Positions 27,701-38,925 of a stretch of 64,000 bases of DNA are shown piece by piece. The stretch is from NCBI GenBank assembly GCA_965112735.1, contig OZ218950.1, forward strand, positions 2,108,001-2,172,000. The letters run 5' to 3'. The notes beneath the pieces are model-generated. The model saw only the letters and a program-made list of their open reading frames with translations, did no database searches and had not been told where the DNA came from. Position numbers and translations under genes: made by a program. The DNA comes from Phaeosaccion multiseriatum. Its lineage: Eukaryota > Protista > Ochrophyta, other classes. The stretch's first letter is position 1. The number at the start of each line of letters is the position of its first letter.

Positions 27701-28250
27701 CGACGAGTGGGGAGAGAGAGTATGAGATCCATAGGCCGAGGAGGAGGGTGAAAAAGGAGGGGGGAGGAGCGGGAAATTGAAGAGGTTGATTTACAACACT
27801 CGAAACAAGGAAGAGTCATTTTCAATTCCCTTTAAAACATGATACGCACCTGGGCACTCTTGCTCGAGTAATCATGAGACACCTCGTACATCCATTGGTC
27901 CATCTGTCAAGAGAGGGAATGCGATTTGATGAAGAGGGGGAGGAAGGACGGGAGTTAGTTGACGAGGGGTCGATTCCTTCAAAGTGCTTCTCCCGTTCAC
28001 TCACCTCACTAATGATGACAGCAGAGTCGGACGATGAGCCCGGAAGAGACTGGGCCATCAAGCTGCTGTCTGGTCGCGGGCGCGGCCTCTTGTGGAGTGA
28101 GGAAGAAAAGGAGGTTGAAGGTGGCGCCAGGAACGAAGAGCACCGTTTAAATTGAGGGAAGCACAGCATCGCAAGCAAGACAGCCCCTTGGTGTCCAGCC
28201 ATACGAAGACGAGTCCTAACCCGTTTCCGTCGGTGTTGATGATGCGCCAT
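24014..28250 (-). CDS. Plastid-targeted protein with two DUF1415-like domains
   Basis: About nine in-frame GT-AG exons. Presequence ...CSS-FLAPP. Domain 1: EDFWREV, LSLFVAPYC, FDVFNALND, MRHFHP, RNSPYPSFSL. Domain 2: ADVWEAT, STLLVTPDF, FQRFGDTL, IEVFHP, RMTPFPTIHLR. Confidence 0.65.
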
Positions 28251-28411
28251 TTTCGTAAAACGATCTCTGCCTCTCCTTTTCAAAGAAAAGCAGCCGCTGG
28301 GAATATATTTAGTAAGTCATCAATCGCCATATGTACATTTGGCTGAATCACCAACACGGGAAGTGTATTCGATTTGGATTTCGGATTTCAGATTTCAGCC
28401 CTCCACAGAGA

Positions 28412-29786
28412 ATGGCGTGGTGGTGGAGAAAGTCAGGGTCCGGTAAGCGCGGAGGAGGCGCAGGAGTTCTCTCTCCTTCGAGCGGCAGCGGAGGGGGGGG
28501 AGGAGGAGTGAGCGAAAAGTTTGTGAGCTTTTACAGGGGATTGCCTCAGAGCAAGGACAGTGCGGTGCGCTTCTTCAAGAGAGGTCAGTCAACCCTTGTC
28601 CTTTTTAACGAGAAGTGTTACCCTCCCCGTCTTCAATTGTCTCAATATAATTCACTCTTACTTTCGCTCCTCCAACCCCCCCCCCCCACCAAAATTTTAG
28701 CGAGGGACTACACGTACTACACAGTCCATGGACAGGTGGGAACTGGGACCCTGCCAACTCGCCTGAAGTACACCTCCCTGCTCTTGTTTAGTTGGGTGCA
28801 TCACTGCATCCGCCCCCCTCGTCCTCCGCTTCAAACCCCAGCTTGCTGTTCCCCCCTTTCCTCCCATTGCTTTGTCTCCATCTCTCCCCTCTGGCCCCTG
28901 CTGCATCCCATCTCTCTCGACCCTCTCTCTGTGTCCATCTCTCGCCCCACCATCTCTCTCTTTCTCTCACCTCTGTCTCTCTCTCCACACCTCCCTGCTC
29001 TCTCTCTCTCGTCCCTCTCTTCTCCCTCTCTCTCCTCTCTCTCCTGGTGGAGCAGGATGCCCTCCAAATAGCCAAAGACGCGTACAAGAGCACCAGTGTG
29101 GTGCAGACCACGGTCAGTATATGGATAAGGCAATGAATGCAATCCCGCATGGAATGAAATGGAGTAGCCCTGAACCTCGCGCTCACTGACGAACCGAACC
29201 ACCCCTAGCTGACGTCCTTCCTTGCCTCCTCGCTGACTCTGCCCGTCGCTGTGGCTGTGGCTGTGGCTGTGCCCCCCCCGCCTGCCCTGCCGTGCTCTGT
29301 TATTCTCTGCACGGTGCTGCTTTGCTCTGTACTTCGCCTTTCCCGTCGTACCCGCCTTGCCCACAGGCTGGGCTGGCCACACTCAACGTCTCCGTGAAGC
29401 TCTTCTCCAGCCTCGTGGTGTCCCTCTTGGGACAGAACAGACGCATAGAAATCTGGTAAGTGAAAGCGGAAAGGGGCACACTTTGTTCCATAAGACGATA
29501 GAACCACGACAAGACTTGCGACAAGAACAACCAATCATGAGCAGCGGCAACAGTAGCAGCGACAGCAGCAGCGACGGCAGCCGCAAGGGTCCGGAAAAGG
29601 AAGGACTATCGGCTTTATGAGGCCATGTACTGCCATCTACTGCCCTCTCTCCCTACTCACTCCCGCCCTCCCTCCCGTGACCCACTCCCTCCACCCCTCC
29701 ACCCCTGCCCTTCTTTCTTCTTCCCCCCATCCCTTCCTCTTCCCTGCCTCCTTTCCGTGAACATACGCACACACACGCACACACTT

Positions 29787-29821
<35 letters not shown>

Positions 29822-30323
29822 GAGCAGCAGAACAACACGTGGAGCATTCACAAGGAGGCATCTCCCGGCAACGTGGACGCTCTCCTCGGTAGCGATGTGC
29901 CCACAGACAGGCAGTCAGCAGAGATTCTGGAGGAGCTCAGCGCAGGGGCAATCATCATGGCGGTGCATCGCACAGCCAGGTGGGTACTTGGGTGGGTGGG
30001 TAGTAAGTCAATGGGTCAGTGGATGCAGTATGTCAATGGGTGGGGGGCTGGGTGGGGTAGGTGTGGTGGGTGGGAGGTACGAGGGTTTCTGCTGCTCTTG
30101 TCCTACGGCGGGTGGTCGCTGCTCGGCGCAGCAAGGCAAGGGAAGGGGAAGTTGATTGGCAAGTCATGGAGACAAAGGGAAGGGGAAGTTGATTGGCAAG
30201 TCATGGAGACAAAGGATGGGGCGGGGGTTGGTGCATCAAAAATACACACAGAGGGGGCAAGAGCGAGAGAGAGGGAGAGAGGGAGAGAGAGAGAGAGACA
30301 AAGAGAGAGGGGGAGAGAGAGAC

Positions 30324-30369
<46 letters not shown>

Positions 30370-32786
30370 AGCGAGAGAGAGACAGGCGGAGCGAAATGTG
30401 TGGGAGGTGAGAGGCAAGGTACGCGAAGGTCCCTCTTCTCTCTCTCGACCCTGTTCTCTCCCCTCATGCCGTGTATGGTTGGGTTTCTTTCTGTGTGTCC
30501 TCTTGTTCCTCCTCCTCCTCCTCCTCTTCCTCCTCCTCCTCCTCCTCCTCCTCCTCCTCCTCCTCCTCCTCCTCCTCCTCCTCCTCCTCCTCCTCCTCCT
30601 CCTCCTCCTCCTCCTCCTCCTCCTTCTCCTCCTCCTCTTCCTCCTCCTCCTCCTCCTCCTCCTCCTCCCTCCCTCCCACTCCTTCCTCCTTTTCCTCCTC
30701 CTCCTCCTCCTCCTCCTCCTCCTCCTCCTCCTCCTCCTCCTCCTCCTCCTTCTCCTTTTCCTCCTCCTCCTCCTCCTCCTCCTCCTCCTCCTCCTCCCAC
30801 TCATTCCTCCTCCTACTCATTCCTCCTCCTCTTCTTCTTCCTCCTCCTCCTCCTCCTCCTCTTCCTCCTCCTCCTCCTCCTCCTCCTCCTCCCTCCCACT
30901 CCTTCCTCCTCCTCTTCCTCCTTTAACCCCCACCCCCTCCCACCCGTCCTCCTCCCTCTCCCTCCCCCTCCCCACCAGGGGAGCTGTGGGAGTCGCCTTC
31001 CTGAACCTCACCTTCAAATCCATTGGGGTCCTCGAGTGGGGCAACGATGACACTAGCGCCGGTGGAGGCGGTGGCAGTAGTGGTGGTGGTGGTGGCTACA
31101 GCAAGGGGGGAGCCGGAGCCGGACTCGGCGGCGGTGGTGCGGGTTTGGGGATGGGCAAGCAGCAGCTGGCGGCGGTGGCGGTGCAGGCTGGTGCAAGGGA
31201 AGCCCTGGTGGAGGAGAGCGAACAAGAGGCCGTGGCCACACTGGAGGACGGGTGTGGATTACTCGTGCATCGCAAGAAGAAGGCGGATTTCCGCGTTACC
31301 AACAGAGACGAAGCTGTCGCGGAGGTGGCACGCTTACTTGCTTTGGAGGAGGAGGTCGGGGGGGGCACAGGCGAAGAGGAAGGAGGAGGGGGAGAGGGAG
31401 GAGGAGGAGGAGGAGGAGGAGGAGGAGGAGGAGGAGGCGTGGGGGTGTCGGCGGATGTGCTGTACGACATGCCTGTGGCGCTGAGTGCTCTGATGAGCAT
31501 TGTTAGGCACTTGGGCCTCTCGCACGACGCTGACAAGAAAGAGACCTTCCACTTGCGTGTCGAGGTGTGCTCGGAGCTCATGGTAAGAAGGGGGGAGGGA
31601 GGGAGGGAGGGAGGGAGGGAGGATGAGAGAGGGAGGGAGGGAGGGAGGGAGGGAGGGAGGGAGGGAGGGAGGGAGGGAGGGAGGGAAGGAGGGAGGGAGG
31701 AAGAGAGAGGGAGGGAGGGAGAGAGGGAGGGAGGGAGGGAGGAAGGAAGAGAGGGAGGGAGGGAGGGAGGGAGGGACGGAGGGAGGGAGGGACGGACGGA
31801 GGGAGGGACGGATGAACGGACGGACGGACGCAGAGAGGTTTTGATGTCGTCAGTGTCAGTGGGCGATTTCTCGCGTGTCACTCGCTGTGCACTTGACGTA
31901 CGATGATGTCTTGAATTTCACCCCCCCCCCCCCCCCCGAGATCCGACCTTCTTGTTTAGTTGCACCCCAATCCCTGGCCGTCTTCTATGCTGGTCTAGTG
32001 TCTAGCATCTCCTTCTATGGGGAACGTTCTGGTGGAGCACCTCCTTCTATACGGAACACTCATGTGTGTTTGTGCTTGTGCTTCTCGTTCGTGACGTCTC
32101 TTCCTTCCCTGTTCCTATCATCTCCCTGCATCCTCCCTCCCTCCCTCCCTCTCTTCCGCCTGCCCAAACCACAGTCTTACGATGCGACAGTTTCATCCGC
32201 TCTCACCGTCTTCCCTGATCGCCGGCGCCTCCACATGATGATGGCACCAGATGGAGGAGGGGGAGGAGGAGGTCACGGCGGATTGGCACTGAGCTCTGAG
32301 GCAGACGTAGCCGCGAGTGGGGGAAGGGGGAGAGTAGCAGCAGGAGGAGGAGGAGGAGGAGAAGGAGCAGGGGTGGATCTGAGTCTGTTTGGGCTCCTCA
32401 ACAGAACGCGGACCCTCATGGGCGCACGCCTGCTCAAGGATTGGCTGCAGCACCCCCTCTTGAGCGTTGACGCAATTGAGGGTCGTTTGGATATGGTCGA
32501 GTGTCTGTCCAGCGGAGGAGGAGGGGGAGGAGGGGGCGCGGCGTTGGTGGACACGCTTAGGCAGAGTACGAGTGCATTGAAGGGTATGCCCGATTTGGGC
32601 AGGGCGCTACAAAAGTTTACAGCCAAGCCGTTACGGCCCTCGCTGGAGGTGATGCTGACGGTGTACAAGAGTTTGGTACGTATGACCGGGATTGAAGCCG
32701 CGCTCACGGCCGAGTTTGGCGATGGAGAGGATGATGAAGATGGAGAAGACGAAGGAGAAGGAGGAGGAGCAGGGGGGACAGCAGGG

Positions 32787-32823
<37 letters not shown>

Positions 32824-33743
32824 GAGGAGGAGGAGGAGCAGTGGGGACGGAGTCGGAGCGAGAAAAGGAACGAGGGGCGGAGGCCGGGGCGTTGGCAATA
32901 ATGAAGAACATCGCCAAGCCCTTGCGACAAGTAGTGCGCTCTCTGGACAAGTTCGGGGCCTTGGTGGAGAAGTTGGTGGACCAGGAAATGCTCACAAATA
33001 GCAAAGGCAAGACGGTGAGGGTCAAGGCCTCTTTCCACAGGGAGCTTCAGACTTTGCTGGATGAACTTGAGGAGGTCAATGAGAGCATGAAGCAGCTCAG
33101 GCAGCAGGTGGCCAAGACGTGTGGTGAGTCGGGAAGAGAGGGAGAGAGGGGGAGCGGGAGTGGCGGGGGCGGGCGGGAAGGAGAGGGGTGGAGAGGGAGA
33201 GGGAGAGGGAGAGGGAGAGGGAGAAGGAGGGGAAGAGGGCGAGGGAGAGGGAGGGAAGAGAGAGAGGGAGAGAAGAGGGAGAGGGAGGGCGAAAGATACA
33301 CAGAGAGAGTGAGAGGGAGCGGAGTGGAATGGAGTGGAGTGCCGATTGAGTGGTTGGAGCGAGGCGGTGAGGTTGTATGGAACGAACCCACCCCTGCATC
33401 TCATCTTCTCATCTCTCGTCTCCTTTGCTATCCATCTGTCTGTCTCTCTGTCTGTCTCTCTGTCTGTCTGTCTATCTGTCTGTCTGTCTGTCTATCTGTC
33501 TGTCTATCTGCCTCTCTCTCTGTCTGTCTGTGGTGCGCCAGGACTGGAGAGCGCTCAAGTGAAGCTAGAGCAGAACGCTGTTCATGGAATTCATCTTCGG
33601 GTACGTAATAGTTGGGCTAGGGGTACGTAAGACTTGGGCTAAGGGTAGTAGGAAGTGTAGGGCTGAAGGGCATCTAAAGAAGGGGGGGGCTTTGAATCGG
33701 TACGTATCATTATGTATTCATTCACTGTGTGTGAAGAATGATA

Positions 33744-33778
<35 letters not shown>

Positions 33779-36700
33779 TTGGAGATCAGTATTGGTTGTG
33801 GAAATGATGTCACACCGCGTGTCTGTCCTTGCTCTCTGCCGCGGTGTTTCAAGGCGTCTCTCCCGTCTTGCATCTCATTCTCTTTCCGTTGATCTCTCGC
33901 TCTGACTCTCTCTCCCCCTCACTCACTCTCTCTGTCCCTCTCTCTCCCTCCACCCTCTTCATGAACACGTTCCCCACTCCTCCTTCAACCCCCCTCCACC
34001 CCCTACCCTGGCCTCTCAGGTTACGAAGAAGGACCAGAAGTGTTTGTCCAAGCTCTCGTCGTCGACAAATCTATCTGTGCAGAAAGCAGGCGTGCTCTTC
34101 ACTACGGACGAGCTTAGGACTCTCGCCCACAGGTTGGAGGGGGGGGGGAGAGAAAGGAACAAACACACACACATACACATACGCACGCACGCATACACAC
34201 AGAGAGAGAGGAGAGGGAGGGAAAGCCGCGTGGAAATGAAGGCGAGTGATGAATGACTCAGACCGCCCATATGCCTCCACTCTCTCTCCCTCTCTCTCTG
34301 CTCTCTCTCTCTGCTCTCTCTCTGCTCTCTATACTCTCTCCGTCTCTCTGCTCTCTCTCTACTCCCTCTCTCTCTCTTCTCATGCTGCAGAAAGGAGCGG
34401 ATCACATCAGCATACCAAAAGGCGCAGGCAACAGTCGTGGCTCAGGCCTTTGAAGTGGCAGCCACTTACGCCCCTGTCATGCGGCAGGGAGTAGACCTCC
34501 TCGCTCTGTTGGATGTGCTACTCAGTCTAGCAGTGGTGGCGGGAGAGGAGGAGTGGTGCAGACCATCCATCCTACCCCTGGGCTCCCAGCGGATGGAGGT
34601 GAAGGGTCTGAGGCACCCTTGTGTTGAAGCCGCTGTCGGTGAGGGGGAGAGAAGGAGGGAGGGAGAGACATGCAGAGACAGATGAAGAGAGGGAGAGAAA
34701 GACGGAGAGAGCGAGAGAGAGATGGAGACTCCCCCTTGGCCTCTCACCCCCCCTCCCCTCACCCTCATTCTCACCCTCACCACCTCACCCTCACCCTCGC
34801 CCTCACCCTCGCCCTCACCCTCCCCCTCACCCTCACCGTCACCCTCACCGTCACCCTCACCCTTCCTCTGACGACCGATCCTGACAACTGGCGACCACTG
34901 GATGTCCAACAGGGAGGTCAAACTTCATCCCCAACGACGTCACTATGGAGAAGGACAGCAGACTCATAATCTGGTAAGGAGGCTTGTGTCTTCCTCTTCC
35001 TTCCTCCCTTCCTTCCTCCCTCCCTTCCCTCCTCACTCCTGTCCTTTCTTTTTCTCTCTCCTCGGCCATCCACTGCCATCCTCCCTCCCTTTCCCTTTCC
35101 CTCTCACTCCTTCTGCCTGCCTCTTCCTTCACCTTCCCCTTTTATCTCTCTCACTCCTCTTCCCTCCTCCTCTCTCTCACACACTCACTCTCTACTCCTC
35201 CCTCCACCCCTTCCATCCCTCGCTCCTCTGCTCTCTCTCACACACACTCCCACTCCTCTTGCCCCTTCTCCCCCCCTTTCATCTCTCTACTTCTCTATCT
35301 GTCCATCTCAGCACCGGGCCCAATTGCGGTGGCAAGGTAAGAGAGAGAGAGGGGCAAAAGTTGAGAGCAAAGCAGGGAGGGCAAGCCATGCAAAGGCAAA
35401 GCCTTTGACGGATTTAGATAAAAAGAAAAAAGAGTCTTCCTTCTATTCCAAGCCTTTGACGGATTTAGAAAGAAGAGGCTTCCTTCTATTCAAAGCCTTT
35501 GACGGATTTAGAAAGAAGAGTCTTCCTTCTATTCAAAGCCTTTGACGGATTGAGAAAGAAGAGGCTTCCTTCCTTCTATTCAAAGGAAAATCCTCTAAGC
35601 CCGTTATTTCTCAGTCCCCTACCCTCTCTCCCCACCCCTCCCCTTCACCTTTTCTCTCTCCCGCCTCTCGCCCCACCCCATGCTGCTGGCATTGACTGCC
35701 ATCCCCTCCCCTCTCCTCTGTATGGGCATACATATTGGTCTCAACACTTCAAACTACAGAGGTAAAGACAAAAAGTGTCGCCACAGACATACGCTATGAT
35801 ATATATATATGGATGGTTTTGGGGGAGCAAAAGGGCAATGGAGGGAGGCCGGAAGTCCTTCATTCCTTTGTTCGATGCCCATCTCTCACGCTCATTCGAT
35901 GCATCTTCACTCCCTATCGACTCGCCTCGGCTTGTGCGTTGCGCTTGACTTTTATTGGTCCAAGACTCTTCCCCTTGCTCTACCCTTTCACTTTCCTCCT
36001 CTCACTTCCTTGACCCCGTCCTCCCTCCCTCCCTCCCTCCCTCCCTCCCTCCCTCCCTCCCTCCCTCCCATCCACTGCCATCCCCCAGTACCTTCTGCCG
36101 CAGCCTCGCCCTTGCTTCTCTGTGCATGCAGATTGGAAGCTTTGTACCCGCAGAGCGCGCCACCATGACTGTGGTGGATAAGATTTTGGCCAGGGTGGGC
36201 GCCTCTGACAACCAGGTGGGTGTAGAGTCAATGGGTGGGTGTAGTATATCTATGGGTGCGTACGTGGGTGCGTGGGTGCGTGGGTGCGTGGGAGGATGGG
36301 TCGTGCTGGCATAGAGGCATACTTACAGCCATACTTACAGGCATGCTTGCAGGCATACGGTATGAGGGGATGAGGTGATGTCCTACTCTCAAGTTTCGCG
36401 GTTGTCGCCAATTCCATCCTCTGCCATTCACTGCCATCCGTCCATCCATCTACTGCTCCTCCATCCAATGGCCTCATACTTTGCTGTTTCCTATACCTGG
36501 CCTGGCCTGCGCCCACTTCCTCCCCCTCTCTCCTCTCTCTCAGCTGCGAGGCATCTCCACCTTCATGTCCGAGATGCTTGACACGAAGGAGATCCTCACG
36601 GGTGAGCGACGCTGTATCACCAACTGCTGCTGCCGTATCACCAGCTGCGACTGGTGTTATGTTGTTGCTGTTGTTTTGTTGCCTTTTGTCGTGTGTCCGA

Positions 36701-37998
36701 CTCCCTGACTCTCCTCATCGCTCTGCTGTTCTTAGCTCGTCCCTCCTCCCACCCTCCACCTGCTCACTTGCAACCCAAACCCCAACCCACCCCACCCCAT
36801 CTACTGCCATCCACTGATGCCGCCCACTGCATTCCACTGCCATCCCCCCCACAGCCGCCACCAATTCCTCCCTCGTGTTGATTGACGAGCTTGGCAGAGG
36901 CACGTCATCCGAAGACGGATTCGGCATCGCGTGGAGCGTCGCCAACCGTCTGGTGCCCATCGGATGCATGGTGCTCTTCGCCACCCACTTTCACGAGCTT
37001 ATTAAGCTGGAGGACCAACCAGGTGGGTTTGGGTCTTTAGCAGGAGGAAGAGGAGGGGGAGGAGGATAAGCCTCTCTCCCGGCGCCTCACTAGACTCTCT
37101 TCTCTCTTCTCTCTTCTCTCTTCTCTCTCTCCCTCTCTTTCTCTCTCTCTTTTCTCCATCTCTATCTCCCTCTCTTCCTCTCCCTCCCCCTCTTCCTCCC
37201 TCCCTCCTTCTCGTTGTCTCTCTCTCTGTCGACTTCTCCTTCCTCCTCTCTCTCTCTCCTGACACCAGGCATCCCTGCCCAGAACCTGCACGTCAGCGCA
37301 GCGGAGAGCGACGACAAGAAGCTCACCATGACGTACCAGGTATGCATCCAAGCCATTTGTGTATCTAAGCCAATGGTGACTAAGCCATTTGTAAAGTTGT
37401 GTCAGCCCGCCCGGCCCTTGGGCCATCATTCCCTCGCTTCGTTCTCCCTCCCCCGTCCCTTGTCTCGTCCACTCAACTCGTTCTGTCCTATACTGTACGT
37501 CCTTCCTTCGTCCGGTCTGCCGGGTCTCGCTGGGTGGGTCGGTGGGTCGGTGGATCGGTGACGCTCTTCCTGACGGCGCCTTCCCTTGTTTGCCTGCCTC
37601 TCGCTCTCTTTTTATGTCAATGAAAGGTGTTGCCTGGAGGCTGCGGTAAGAGCTTTGGCATTCACGTTGCTCGCATTGCGGGTTTCCCTCCCTGCGTGGT
37701 GCAGGACGCCGAGCGCATCGCAAAGGAGCTCGACAATCACGGACACGGCACCGTTGTTGTTGATAGCAGCACCAGCACCAGCACCAGCACCAGCACCAGC
37801 ACCACCAACGGCAAGAGCAGAGGCAGTCGCAGCGGCAGTGGAAGGAGAGGGAAGAAGCGGAAAGACAACAAGGACAGGCTTGACCCTGACCAAGCAGCGG
37901 TGCTTCAGGGCTTCCTCGACCTGCCTCTGGGAGAGGAGGGGGAGGAGGGGGAAGGGAGCGTAGGGCCACTAAGAAAACTGTGTAGGCTAGTGCGGTGA
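28412..37998 (+). CDS. MSH2: DNA mismatch repair protein MSH2 (divergent, with Gly-rich insertions)
   Basis: The N-terminal [31 protein letters not shown] is an MSH2 signature. Further motifs [93 protein letters not shown] and SFGIHVA. About 17 exons. Confidence 0.93.
35398..35585. repeat. About 43-bp minisatellite, 4 copies, in an MSH2 intron
   Basis: Unit aaagcctttgacggatttagaaagaagagKcttccttctattc. Confidence 0.9.
35760..35761 (+). other. Predicted 2-nt microexon (AG) of MSH2
   Basis: Context ctacag|AG|gtaaag. It is needed to join ...GGC AAG (phase 0, 35336) to T ACC TTC (phase 2, 36089), giving K-S-T. Confidence 0.65.
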
Positions 37999-38925
37999 GG
38001 GTGGGCGCACTGGGAGAACGACTGCTTCTAAAGCTCATTAACAACAAGACAAGACTTCTTACTTCTGCTTTTTTCTCCCACCAAGGCATCAAGGTCGAGA
38101 GTTGTGCATGTATAGGGTCAAAAGGCAAGCAAAAGAGGGGGGAAGAGAAACGCGAGGGGACGAGAGGCGAAAGAAGGGGAGAGTGGAGAGCACAGGAGAG
38201 ACAGCAGGAGAGGAGAGCGGGGAGGAGGAGACGAGAGGAGAGGAGAGGAGAGGAGAGGAGAGGAGAGGAGAGGAGAGGAGAGGAGAGGAGAGGAGAGGAG
38301 AGGAGAGGAGAGGAGAGGAGAGGAGAGGAGAGGAGAGGAGAGGAGAGGAGAGGAGAGGAGAGGAGAGGAGAGGGGAGGGGAGGAGAGGAGAGGAGAGGAG
38401 AATGGAGATACGAGGAGAGGAGAGAGAGGAGCGTATCGGGCTGCATGGGTTATGTGCCAAGGTGTCAAGTGTGGAGCAGAGAGGAAGGACGGTGGGTCAG
38501 AGTCAGGGTCACGGTCCAAGTCACGGTCAGGGTCAGGGTCAGGGCCTGGGTGAATGTCCAGGCCAGACTCCGGGACAAGACGGAGGGGAGGGTAAGGAAG
38601 GAGGAAGCAGCAATCAAGAGCACAAGGAAAACAATTCAATTAACAAACAATTATAATCTCCGTGTAAGTACTCAATATTCATACGAGGCGCTCATCGAAG
38701 ACAAATCCTTCACCCTCCTACTTTACTTAATCCTCCATCTCTCGATGTTACTCCTTCGGTCCGTTCTCCCTATACCCTATACTCACCCTTCTCTCCAGTC
38801 CCTCCTCCTCTTCCCTCCATCCCTTTCCCAGAAAGTTATCACAACAGCAACAGCACCGCTGTGCTCGCTCGCTCACTCAACTCACTCACTCAACTCGCAC
38901 ACTCCAGGCTCTCGCTCAGGAGCGG

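Follow-up and report, generated by a model that had tools for sequence, protein, structure and literature searches.

The stretch of DNA analyzed here (hereafter the window) comprises 64,000 nucleotides (nt) of contig OZ218950.1 from Phaeosaccion multiseriatum and carries, on its plus strand, a gene for the mismatch repair protein MSH2 in which the codons of the ATPase P-loop are divided among several short exons. When the brown-algal protein P0004 (Scytosiphon promiscuus MSH2) was used as a tblastn query, its residues 3-876 were recovered in colinear order along the window, with identities of the high-scoring segment pairs ranging from 27% to 70% along the gene and from 47 to 70% in the longer C-terminal exons; a Nannochloropsis protein is 48% identical to P0004. 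Pfam matched the exon translations to MutS_III (E=1.1e-22) and, in separate exons, to MutS_V (E=3.6e-19, 8.6e-12, and 1.3e-06), the last of these matches, at 29 bits, lying slightly below the Pfam cut-off of 30.2 bits. The 42-amino acid exon by itself does not tell MSH2 from MSH3 or MutS. P0004 is the nearest full-length relative, and its own relatives all carry the name Msh2. Collectively, these comparisons indicate that the gene is an MSH2 orthologue of a stramenopile outside the sampled brown algae. Its introns measure 117-419 nt elsewhere in the gene, plus one of ~1000 nt, and GT-AG borders were found in all 11 of the other donor/acceptor pairs that were modelled.

The exons around the P-loop are listed in Table 1. 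The first ends with ...AGA CTC ATA ATC TG at 34973 and is followed by GTAAGG, and the second is the 25-nt exon 35312-35336, C ACC GGG CCC AAT TGC GGT GGC AAG, which lies between ctcAG and GTAAGA. Joined to the terminal TG of the upstream exon, the 25-nt exon yields C-T-G-P-N-C-G-G-K, with its end in phase 0. Coding resumes at 36089 with T ACC TTC TGC, directly after atcccccAG, in a block that is thus two bases short of a codon. Because the 42 codons of this block (36090-36215) align with residues 677-718 of human MSH2, the residue that is missing is the Walker A serine, which is S676 in the human protein. Within the gap that separates the two exons, the sequence ctacAG-AG-GTaaag (35754-35767) contains an AG, at 35760-35761, with an acceptor immediately before it and a donor immediately after it, and it divides the gap into segments of 423 and 327 nt. 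When AG is added ahead of the third exon the Walker A motif GxxxxGK[ST] is intact (GPNCGGKS-T), the frame stays open on to FATHFHEL, and MutS domain V is preserved; the motif is intact only with AG included, and without it translation meets the TAA at 36179-36181. The initial annotation had given the 25-nt exon and its donor, the start of the next block, the position of the AG, and the lengths of the two segments, all of which proved exact on re-reading, and it had also correctly foreseen that skipping the AG would frameshift MSH2.

The need for two extra bases, likewise proposed in the initial annotation, was borne out by enumeration: when GT and GC donors were combined with AG acceptors between the two exons, no canonical pairing kept both the reading frame and Walker A. 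Other canonical splices over the gap (for example, from a donor at 35360) lose the P-loop or insert junk, and they conflict with the letter count of the transcript given below. Candidates for a microexon elsewhere in the gap were also considered. Two AG-AG-GC sites, at 35474 and 35560, lie in a 43-nt repeat and combine an AAG acceptor in a purine-rich context with a GCTTCC donor, and were rejected. The other way to begin a serine codon, AG-TC-GT, does not occur in the gap 35337-36088.

Both bases are present in messenger RNA (mRNA). The transcript evidence comes from run X5, which belongs to another sample and another study than the DNA runs and is labelled 'DNA?'. X5 behaves effectively as a transcriptome of the organism. 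It has a fraction of only 0.32 of the gene-region words, and in its contigs the introns are spliced out, with almost none of their sequence present in the run. None of the runs recorded as RNA contains the MSH2 locus. One spliced X5 contig (record 25; 1410 nt, depth 43.5) crosses the P-loop in pieces placed at 34912-34972 (record letters 620-680), 36087-36212 (468-593), and 36541-36601 (407-467), each with 0 other letters. Between the first two pieces sit 26 record letters (594-619), which the depth table puts at 35311-35336; the depth of 18.5 in bin 35307-35367 equals 26 x 43.5/61, and that of 9.27 in bin 36039-36099 equals 13 x 43.5/61. The aligner shifts ambiguous letters rightward, and the same effect is seen at 36212/36541, where CAG is common to both sides. 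A direct splice from 35336 to 36089 predicts 24 letters between the pieces. Because 26 letters rather than 24 were counted, the mRNA has AG ahead of TACC and encodes GKST in frame. The transcript runs ...34973 / 35312-35336 / AG / 36089-36215 / 36544-..., and its product is established as in frame.

The initial annotation had raised the prospect of a 2-nt assembly collapse at the acceptor of the third exon. Contigs from three DNA runs (X1, X3, and X4) match the window over 35040-36011 and over 36080-36289, with no deviating letter and no gap, at depths of 390-495, 99-111, and 35-49, respectively, and no indel at the acceptor (36087-36088) is listed in any of them. The three are runs of one sample and possibly the source data of the window, yet they represent an independent de Bruijn assembly. 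Since the contigs of all three runs agree with the window without indels, a collapse at this position is excluded, and the DNA sequence over the acceptor is established. One X3 contig has an additional GT after 36226, where intron 36216-36543 begins with GT-rich sequence; the insertion may be a length variant or belong to a repeat located elsewhere.

The genomic origin of the two letters is a different question, as the acceptor at 36089 itself ends in AG. A microexon at 35760-35761 and a single noncanonical GT..CC intron spanning 35337-36086 (which leaves the AG at 36087-36088 exonic and makes the internal AGAGGT a coincidence) yield an identical mRNA, GGCAAG-AG-TACC, and mRNA alone cannot place the origin of the AG at one or the other. 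Complementary DNA, to which the initial annotation had looked for a decision, thus confirmed the AG and the in-frame form but cannot separate the two structures, an ambiguity that had been overlooked. We therefore turn to the sequence of the gap itself.

The hexamer AGAGGT occurs 35 times in 128 kb (both strands of the window), from which ~0.21 occurrences are expected per 752 nt, and the gap contains exactly one. We scored splice sites with matrices built from the 11 other sites of MSH2. By these scores the acceptor of the AGAGGT in the gap ranks first among the 48 internal AGs, and its donor ranks first among the 17 internal GTs. Among the 35 occurrences it has the highest acceptor score and the third-highest combined score, the two better ones being ordinary exon ends, and the chance expectation of an equally good site is ~0.01-0.02 per gap. 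The base composition of the gap also resembles that of two introns, as the initial annotation had noted. A run from purine-rich to pyrimidine-rich sequence is seen in 8 of the 10 other modelled MSH2 introns (the exceptions being those that start at 34974 and 36602), and the gap passes through this cycle twice: its four quarters have purine fractions of 0.63, 0.30, 0.52, and 0.19. In addition, lengths of 423 and 327 nt match MSH2 introns better than one of 752 nt. Given the best internal sites, their low chance expectation, the two composition cycles, the fitting lengths, and the GT-AG borders used elsewhere in the gene, we favor a 2-nt microexon AG at 35760-35761 that supplies the first two bases of the serine codon, and we assign this reading a probability of about 0.72. 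The proposal of the initial annotation that the microexon is the source of the AG is, to that extent, the most plausible one, with the qualification that the AG at 36087-36088 can serve the same mRNA.

A further regularity that favors the microexon concerns a 10-mer, ACTGCCATCC, which is found in 6 plus-strand copies within 1.8 kb (35072, 35695, 36074, 36430, 36803, and 36836), usually with CCATyC just before it, where 0.18 copies are expected in the whole window. It is present in each of five consecutive MSH2 introns only when the two segments of the gap are counted as separate introns. The 10-mer may have spread by local copying among the introns, or it may serve as a splicing signal specific to this gene. 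Twice it directly adjoins an acceptor, in CCACTGCCATCCCCCAG and CCACTGCCATCCCCCCCACAG.

According to the microexon reading, the gap would consist of two ordinary GT-AG introns, A (35337-35759) and B (35762-36088), with a constitutive 2-nt exon AG between them. An exon of 2 nt would be too short for definition across itself, so that A and B would be removed sequentially by intron definition. If A went first, the product AAG.AG-GTAAAG would regenerate a usable site, and if B went first, CTACAG-AG.TACC would do so. Either order would give GGC AAG AGT ACC, that is, G-K-S-T, restoring the Walker A serine and the frame of the ATPase. We infer both the splicing order and the origin of the AG at 35760-35761. 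X5 has a low-depth contig (35847-36007, depth 3.5) within intron B and none within intron A, which, as a single contig, fits a removal of the two introns at different times.

Several observations weigh against the microexon. Both of its sites score 3.6-3.7 bits, compared with 7-17 bits for the other sites of MSH2, although the latter figures are inflated because they are training sites scored on themselves. The donor GTAAAG lacks the G at +5 that is present in 11 of the 11 other donors, and the final 20 nt ahead of the acceptor are only moderately pyrimidine-rich. None of the contigs contains a 35336-35760 or 35761-36089 joint in genomic context, and the X5 depth is 0 in bin 35734-35794. The letters of the X5 contig were not themselves read, their identity being deduced from coordinates, depth arithmetic, and the count of 0 other letters. 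Finally, conservation lends no support, as the brown algae are intronless here and closer relatives were not found in the protein and metagenome collections.

The weakness of the internal sites suits a single GT..CC intron, as does the placement of the X5 contig by the aligner, in which the piece begins at 36087 exactly as such an intron would have it, and the mRNA it yields is exactly that of the microexon. Its cost is considerable. It would stand alone beside 11 of 11 GT-AG pairs in the same gene, it would need the 0.01-0.02 coincidence for the internal site, and it would require a 752-nt intron with two composition cycles. Moreover, for its second step the spliceosome takes whichever AG comes first after the branch point, and to our knowledge a CC 3' intron end beside a perfect CAG is essentially without precedent; the AG would be preferred, which counts against this structure. 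We regard it as improbable.

Somewhat less probable still is a difference between strains or alleles, in which the organism of X5 has ccccAGAGTACC and one ordinary intron, and the sequenced strain has lost two bases by slippage. The sequenced strain would then carry a frameshifted MSH2 and be a mutator. Sample and study do differ between X5 and the DNA runs, X5 has no contig that spans the acceptor with its genomic flanks, and slippage from AGAG to AG is plausible in a genome rich in microsatellites. Yet the X5 pieces (248 nt exonic, 161 nt from intron B) are without other letters, which makes the strains near-identical, a second allele is not seen in the DNA contigs at depths of 49-390, and the remaining motifs of MSH2 are all intact. 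This reading, too, would leave the internal AGAGGT, with the best flanking sites, to coincidence.

About equally unlikely is a regulatory role for the microexon, an addition to the reading we favor rather than a replacement of it. The initial annotation had proposed a switch in which inclusion of the AG varies; skipping, or splicing at the second AG as a zero-length recursive site, would frameshift MSH2 and could tune mismatch repair in a genome saturated with microsatellites. Such a gate would, through weak and order-dependent sites, let the cell cut functional MSH2 by way of frameshifted, decay-prone transcripts and thereby raise the rate of mutation and of microsatellite slippage. Any mis-splicing here frameshifts the message and leads to the stop at 36179-36181, so that the skipped form is a null transcript, and weak sites could render inclusion condition-sensitive. 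The in-frame form alone was seen in the single transcript data set, though assembly into contigs loses rare forms. As an acceptor the second AG is of the GAG type, which is the least favored, and the two letters remain in the X5 contig, so zero-length use did not hold up. The proposed switch finds no support in these results, and nothing connects the structure of the gene with the microsatellite load. Rfam returned no family for 28000-38500, and the local fold around the microexon (z -1.8) is unconvincing.

Table 1. Features of the MSH2 gene in the window and around its P-loop
Feature	Position	Strand	Basis
MSH2 orthologue with many short GT-AG introns	~28547..37995 (approximate span)	+	tblastn with P0004; Pfam on exon translations
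Exon ending with TG of the Cys codon	34913..34973	+	X5 contig piece 34912-34972; junction model
Intron GTAAGG...CTCAG, 338 nt, phase 2	34974..35311	+	Skipped in X5 record 25; junction model
25-nt exon, C + TGPNCGGK, Walker A up to Lys	35312..35336	+	Sequence; X5 record 25 letters 594-619
Putative intron A, GTAAGA...CTACAG, 423 nt	35337..35759	+	Best acceptor of 48 internal AGs; composition; X5 depth zero over 35368-35672
43-nt tandem repeat, 3.5 copies, within intron A	35424..35572	+	Tandem Repeats Finder, 94% matches
Putative 2-nt microexon, AG of the Ser codon AGT	35760..35761	+	Sole AGAGGT in 35337-36088; probable origin of the mRNA letters
Putative intron B, GTAAAG...CCCCAG, 327 nt	35762..36088	+	Best donor of 17 internal GTs; second composition cycle; X5 low-depth contig
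(CCTC)12.5 microsatellite, pyrimidine tract of intron B	36020..36069	+	Repeat search
Exon, T of Ser codon + 42 full codons	36089..36215	+	MutS_V E=8.6e-12; X5 piece 36087-36212, 0 other letters
TAA met when AG is omitted (frameshifted form)	36179..36181	+	Translation without AG
Intron GTGGGT...CTCAG, 328 nt	36216..36543	+	Skipped in X5 record 25; junction model
Exon	36544..36601	+	X5 piece 36541-36601

The initial annotation had also suggested a comparison of intron positions among related species, which could be made with brown algae; no closer relative was found in the protein and metagenome collections. Two brown-algal assemblies (L001, from Scytosiphon, and L002) encode GPNMAGKSTFIRS in one exon, the P-loop being GPNMAGKST, and have no intron between the lysine and the serine. 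The nearest intron in both (L001, ~7933; L002, 1987/2193) interrupts the Gly codon of TGPN in phase 1 (ACA G-GG CCC), a position that we take to be that of the human MSH2 exon 12/13 boundary (c.2005/2006). The corresponding intron of the window (34973/35312) is displaced 5 nt upstream, into the Cys codon (phase 2), and this offset could reflect either intron sliding or loss plus gain. The lineage of the window would thus have three introns within 32 nt of coding sequence, two of them new. Introns A and B thus appear, from this comparison, to be lineage-specific gains.

The organism's own MSH2 and its closer relatives were sought in several ways. In the protein collections, phmmer with the 42-amino acid exon found nothing above 71% identity, P0004 found only brown-algal and distant MSH2 proteins, and the domain III exon found nothing, low-complexity words having swamped the first attempt. 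A metagenome scan with the 55-amino acid Walker B exon gave only distant MutS/MSH2 proteins, at <=64% identity.

As for the origin of the two introns, A and B share no similarity with each other except one 10-mer, and by DNA depth (baseline 495 in X1) they are single-copy except at short words. The arrangement AAG[GT...CTAC-AG]AG[GT...CCCC-AG]T is what two insertions in succession would leave if each duplicated an AG. A different repeated word is found in a neighboring intron. The 11-mer GTATCACCAAC, which is absent from introns A and B, starts at 36614, 12 nt into intron 36602-36854, and is followed by a near copy (36614-36645). The DNA depth there is 58,096 in X1 against ~495, more than 100x the single-copy level, and the word has 12 matches in the window with <=1 mismatch, compared with 0.8 expected.

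Other features of the gene lie at a distance from the P-loop. The domain III exon (32160-33116) contains long Gly/Ala/Glu low-complexity insertions that are not in brown-algal MSH2 and that swamp word-based protein searches. The ~1-kb intron 29980-30978 contains, at 30400-31000, several hundred bases of a near-pure CT/CCT-type simple repeat, which reads as poly-Pro, poly-Leu, or poly-Ser depending on the frame. A 2OG-Fe(II) oxygenase gene, which is the downstream neighbor of brown-algal MSH2, had no tblastx match in the window, and on the minus strand of 35300-36100 there are only low-complexity open reading frames.

The proposed structure can be set beside several known systems. In recursive splicing, zero-length AG-GT sites are used in long introns of Drosophila and vertebrates. 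There, as proposed for MSH2, an acceptor is directly followed by a donor inside a long gap and the halves are removed stepwise. In contrast, the MSH2 product keeps two coding bases, the halves are short (423 and 327 nt), and true zero-length use of the second AG, which is not seen, would destroy the frame. The closest parallel in exon size is the single-nucleotide exon of Arabidopsis APC11, for which mutation of the nucleotide supplied the proof (Guo and Liu 2015, PMC4674806). Like the putative MSH2 exon it is constitutive, shorter than 3 nt, flanked by two GT-AG introns, frame-keeping in a conserved protein, and missed by annotation. The MSH2 case differs in that it involves 2 nt, a stramenopile alga, and a catalytic P-loop, and in that it rests on a transcript contig and site analysis. 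A one-nucleotide exon has also been reported in Fusarium CYP621A (PMC12940212), and MEPDB collects plant microexons of 1-15 nt (PMC12409088). These too are ultra-short internal exons recognized through the need for them in homologous proteins; they come from other lineages and are conserved among related species.

The adjacency of introns A and B recalls the stwintrons of fungi, which are nested spliceosomal twin introns (PMC12403724). In both arrangements the introns are adjacent, the removal of one creates the context for the other, and order matters. Stwintrons, however, are nested and leave nothing between them, while the MSH2 introns would be consecutive, with AG left over. Introner-driven intron gain (PMC9860276, PMC12130899) likewise involves a lineage-specific burst of new introns, and GTATCACCAAC is present in a neighboring MSH2 intron. 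In contrast, A and B have single-copy depth except at short words, lack GTATCACCAAC, and are mutually dissimilar; they are at most candidates for an introner origin.

The putative MSH2 exon is thus of a rare but known kind, found in another lineage and in a catalytic motif. The case has transcript support for both letters, it lies outside plants and fungi, and the catalytic motif makes the reading of the frame unambiguous. The spliced contigs of X5, in addition, make it a usable transcriptome for this organism. A 2-nt exon is beyond gene finders, and the annotation of MSH2 would consequently show a frameshifted or split gene or one without its P-loop. Such a misannotation could suggest, wrongly, that mismatch repair has been lost in a microsatellite-rich genome.

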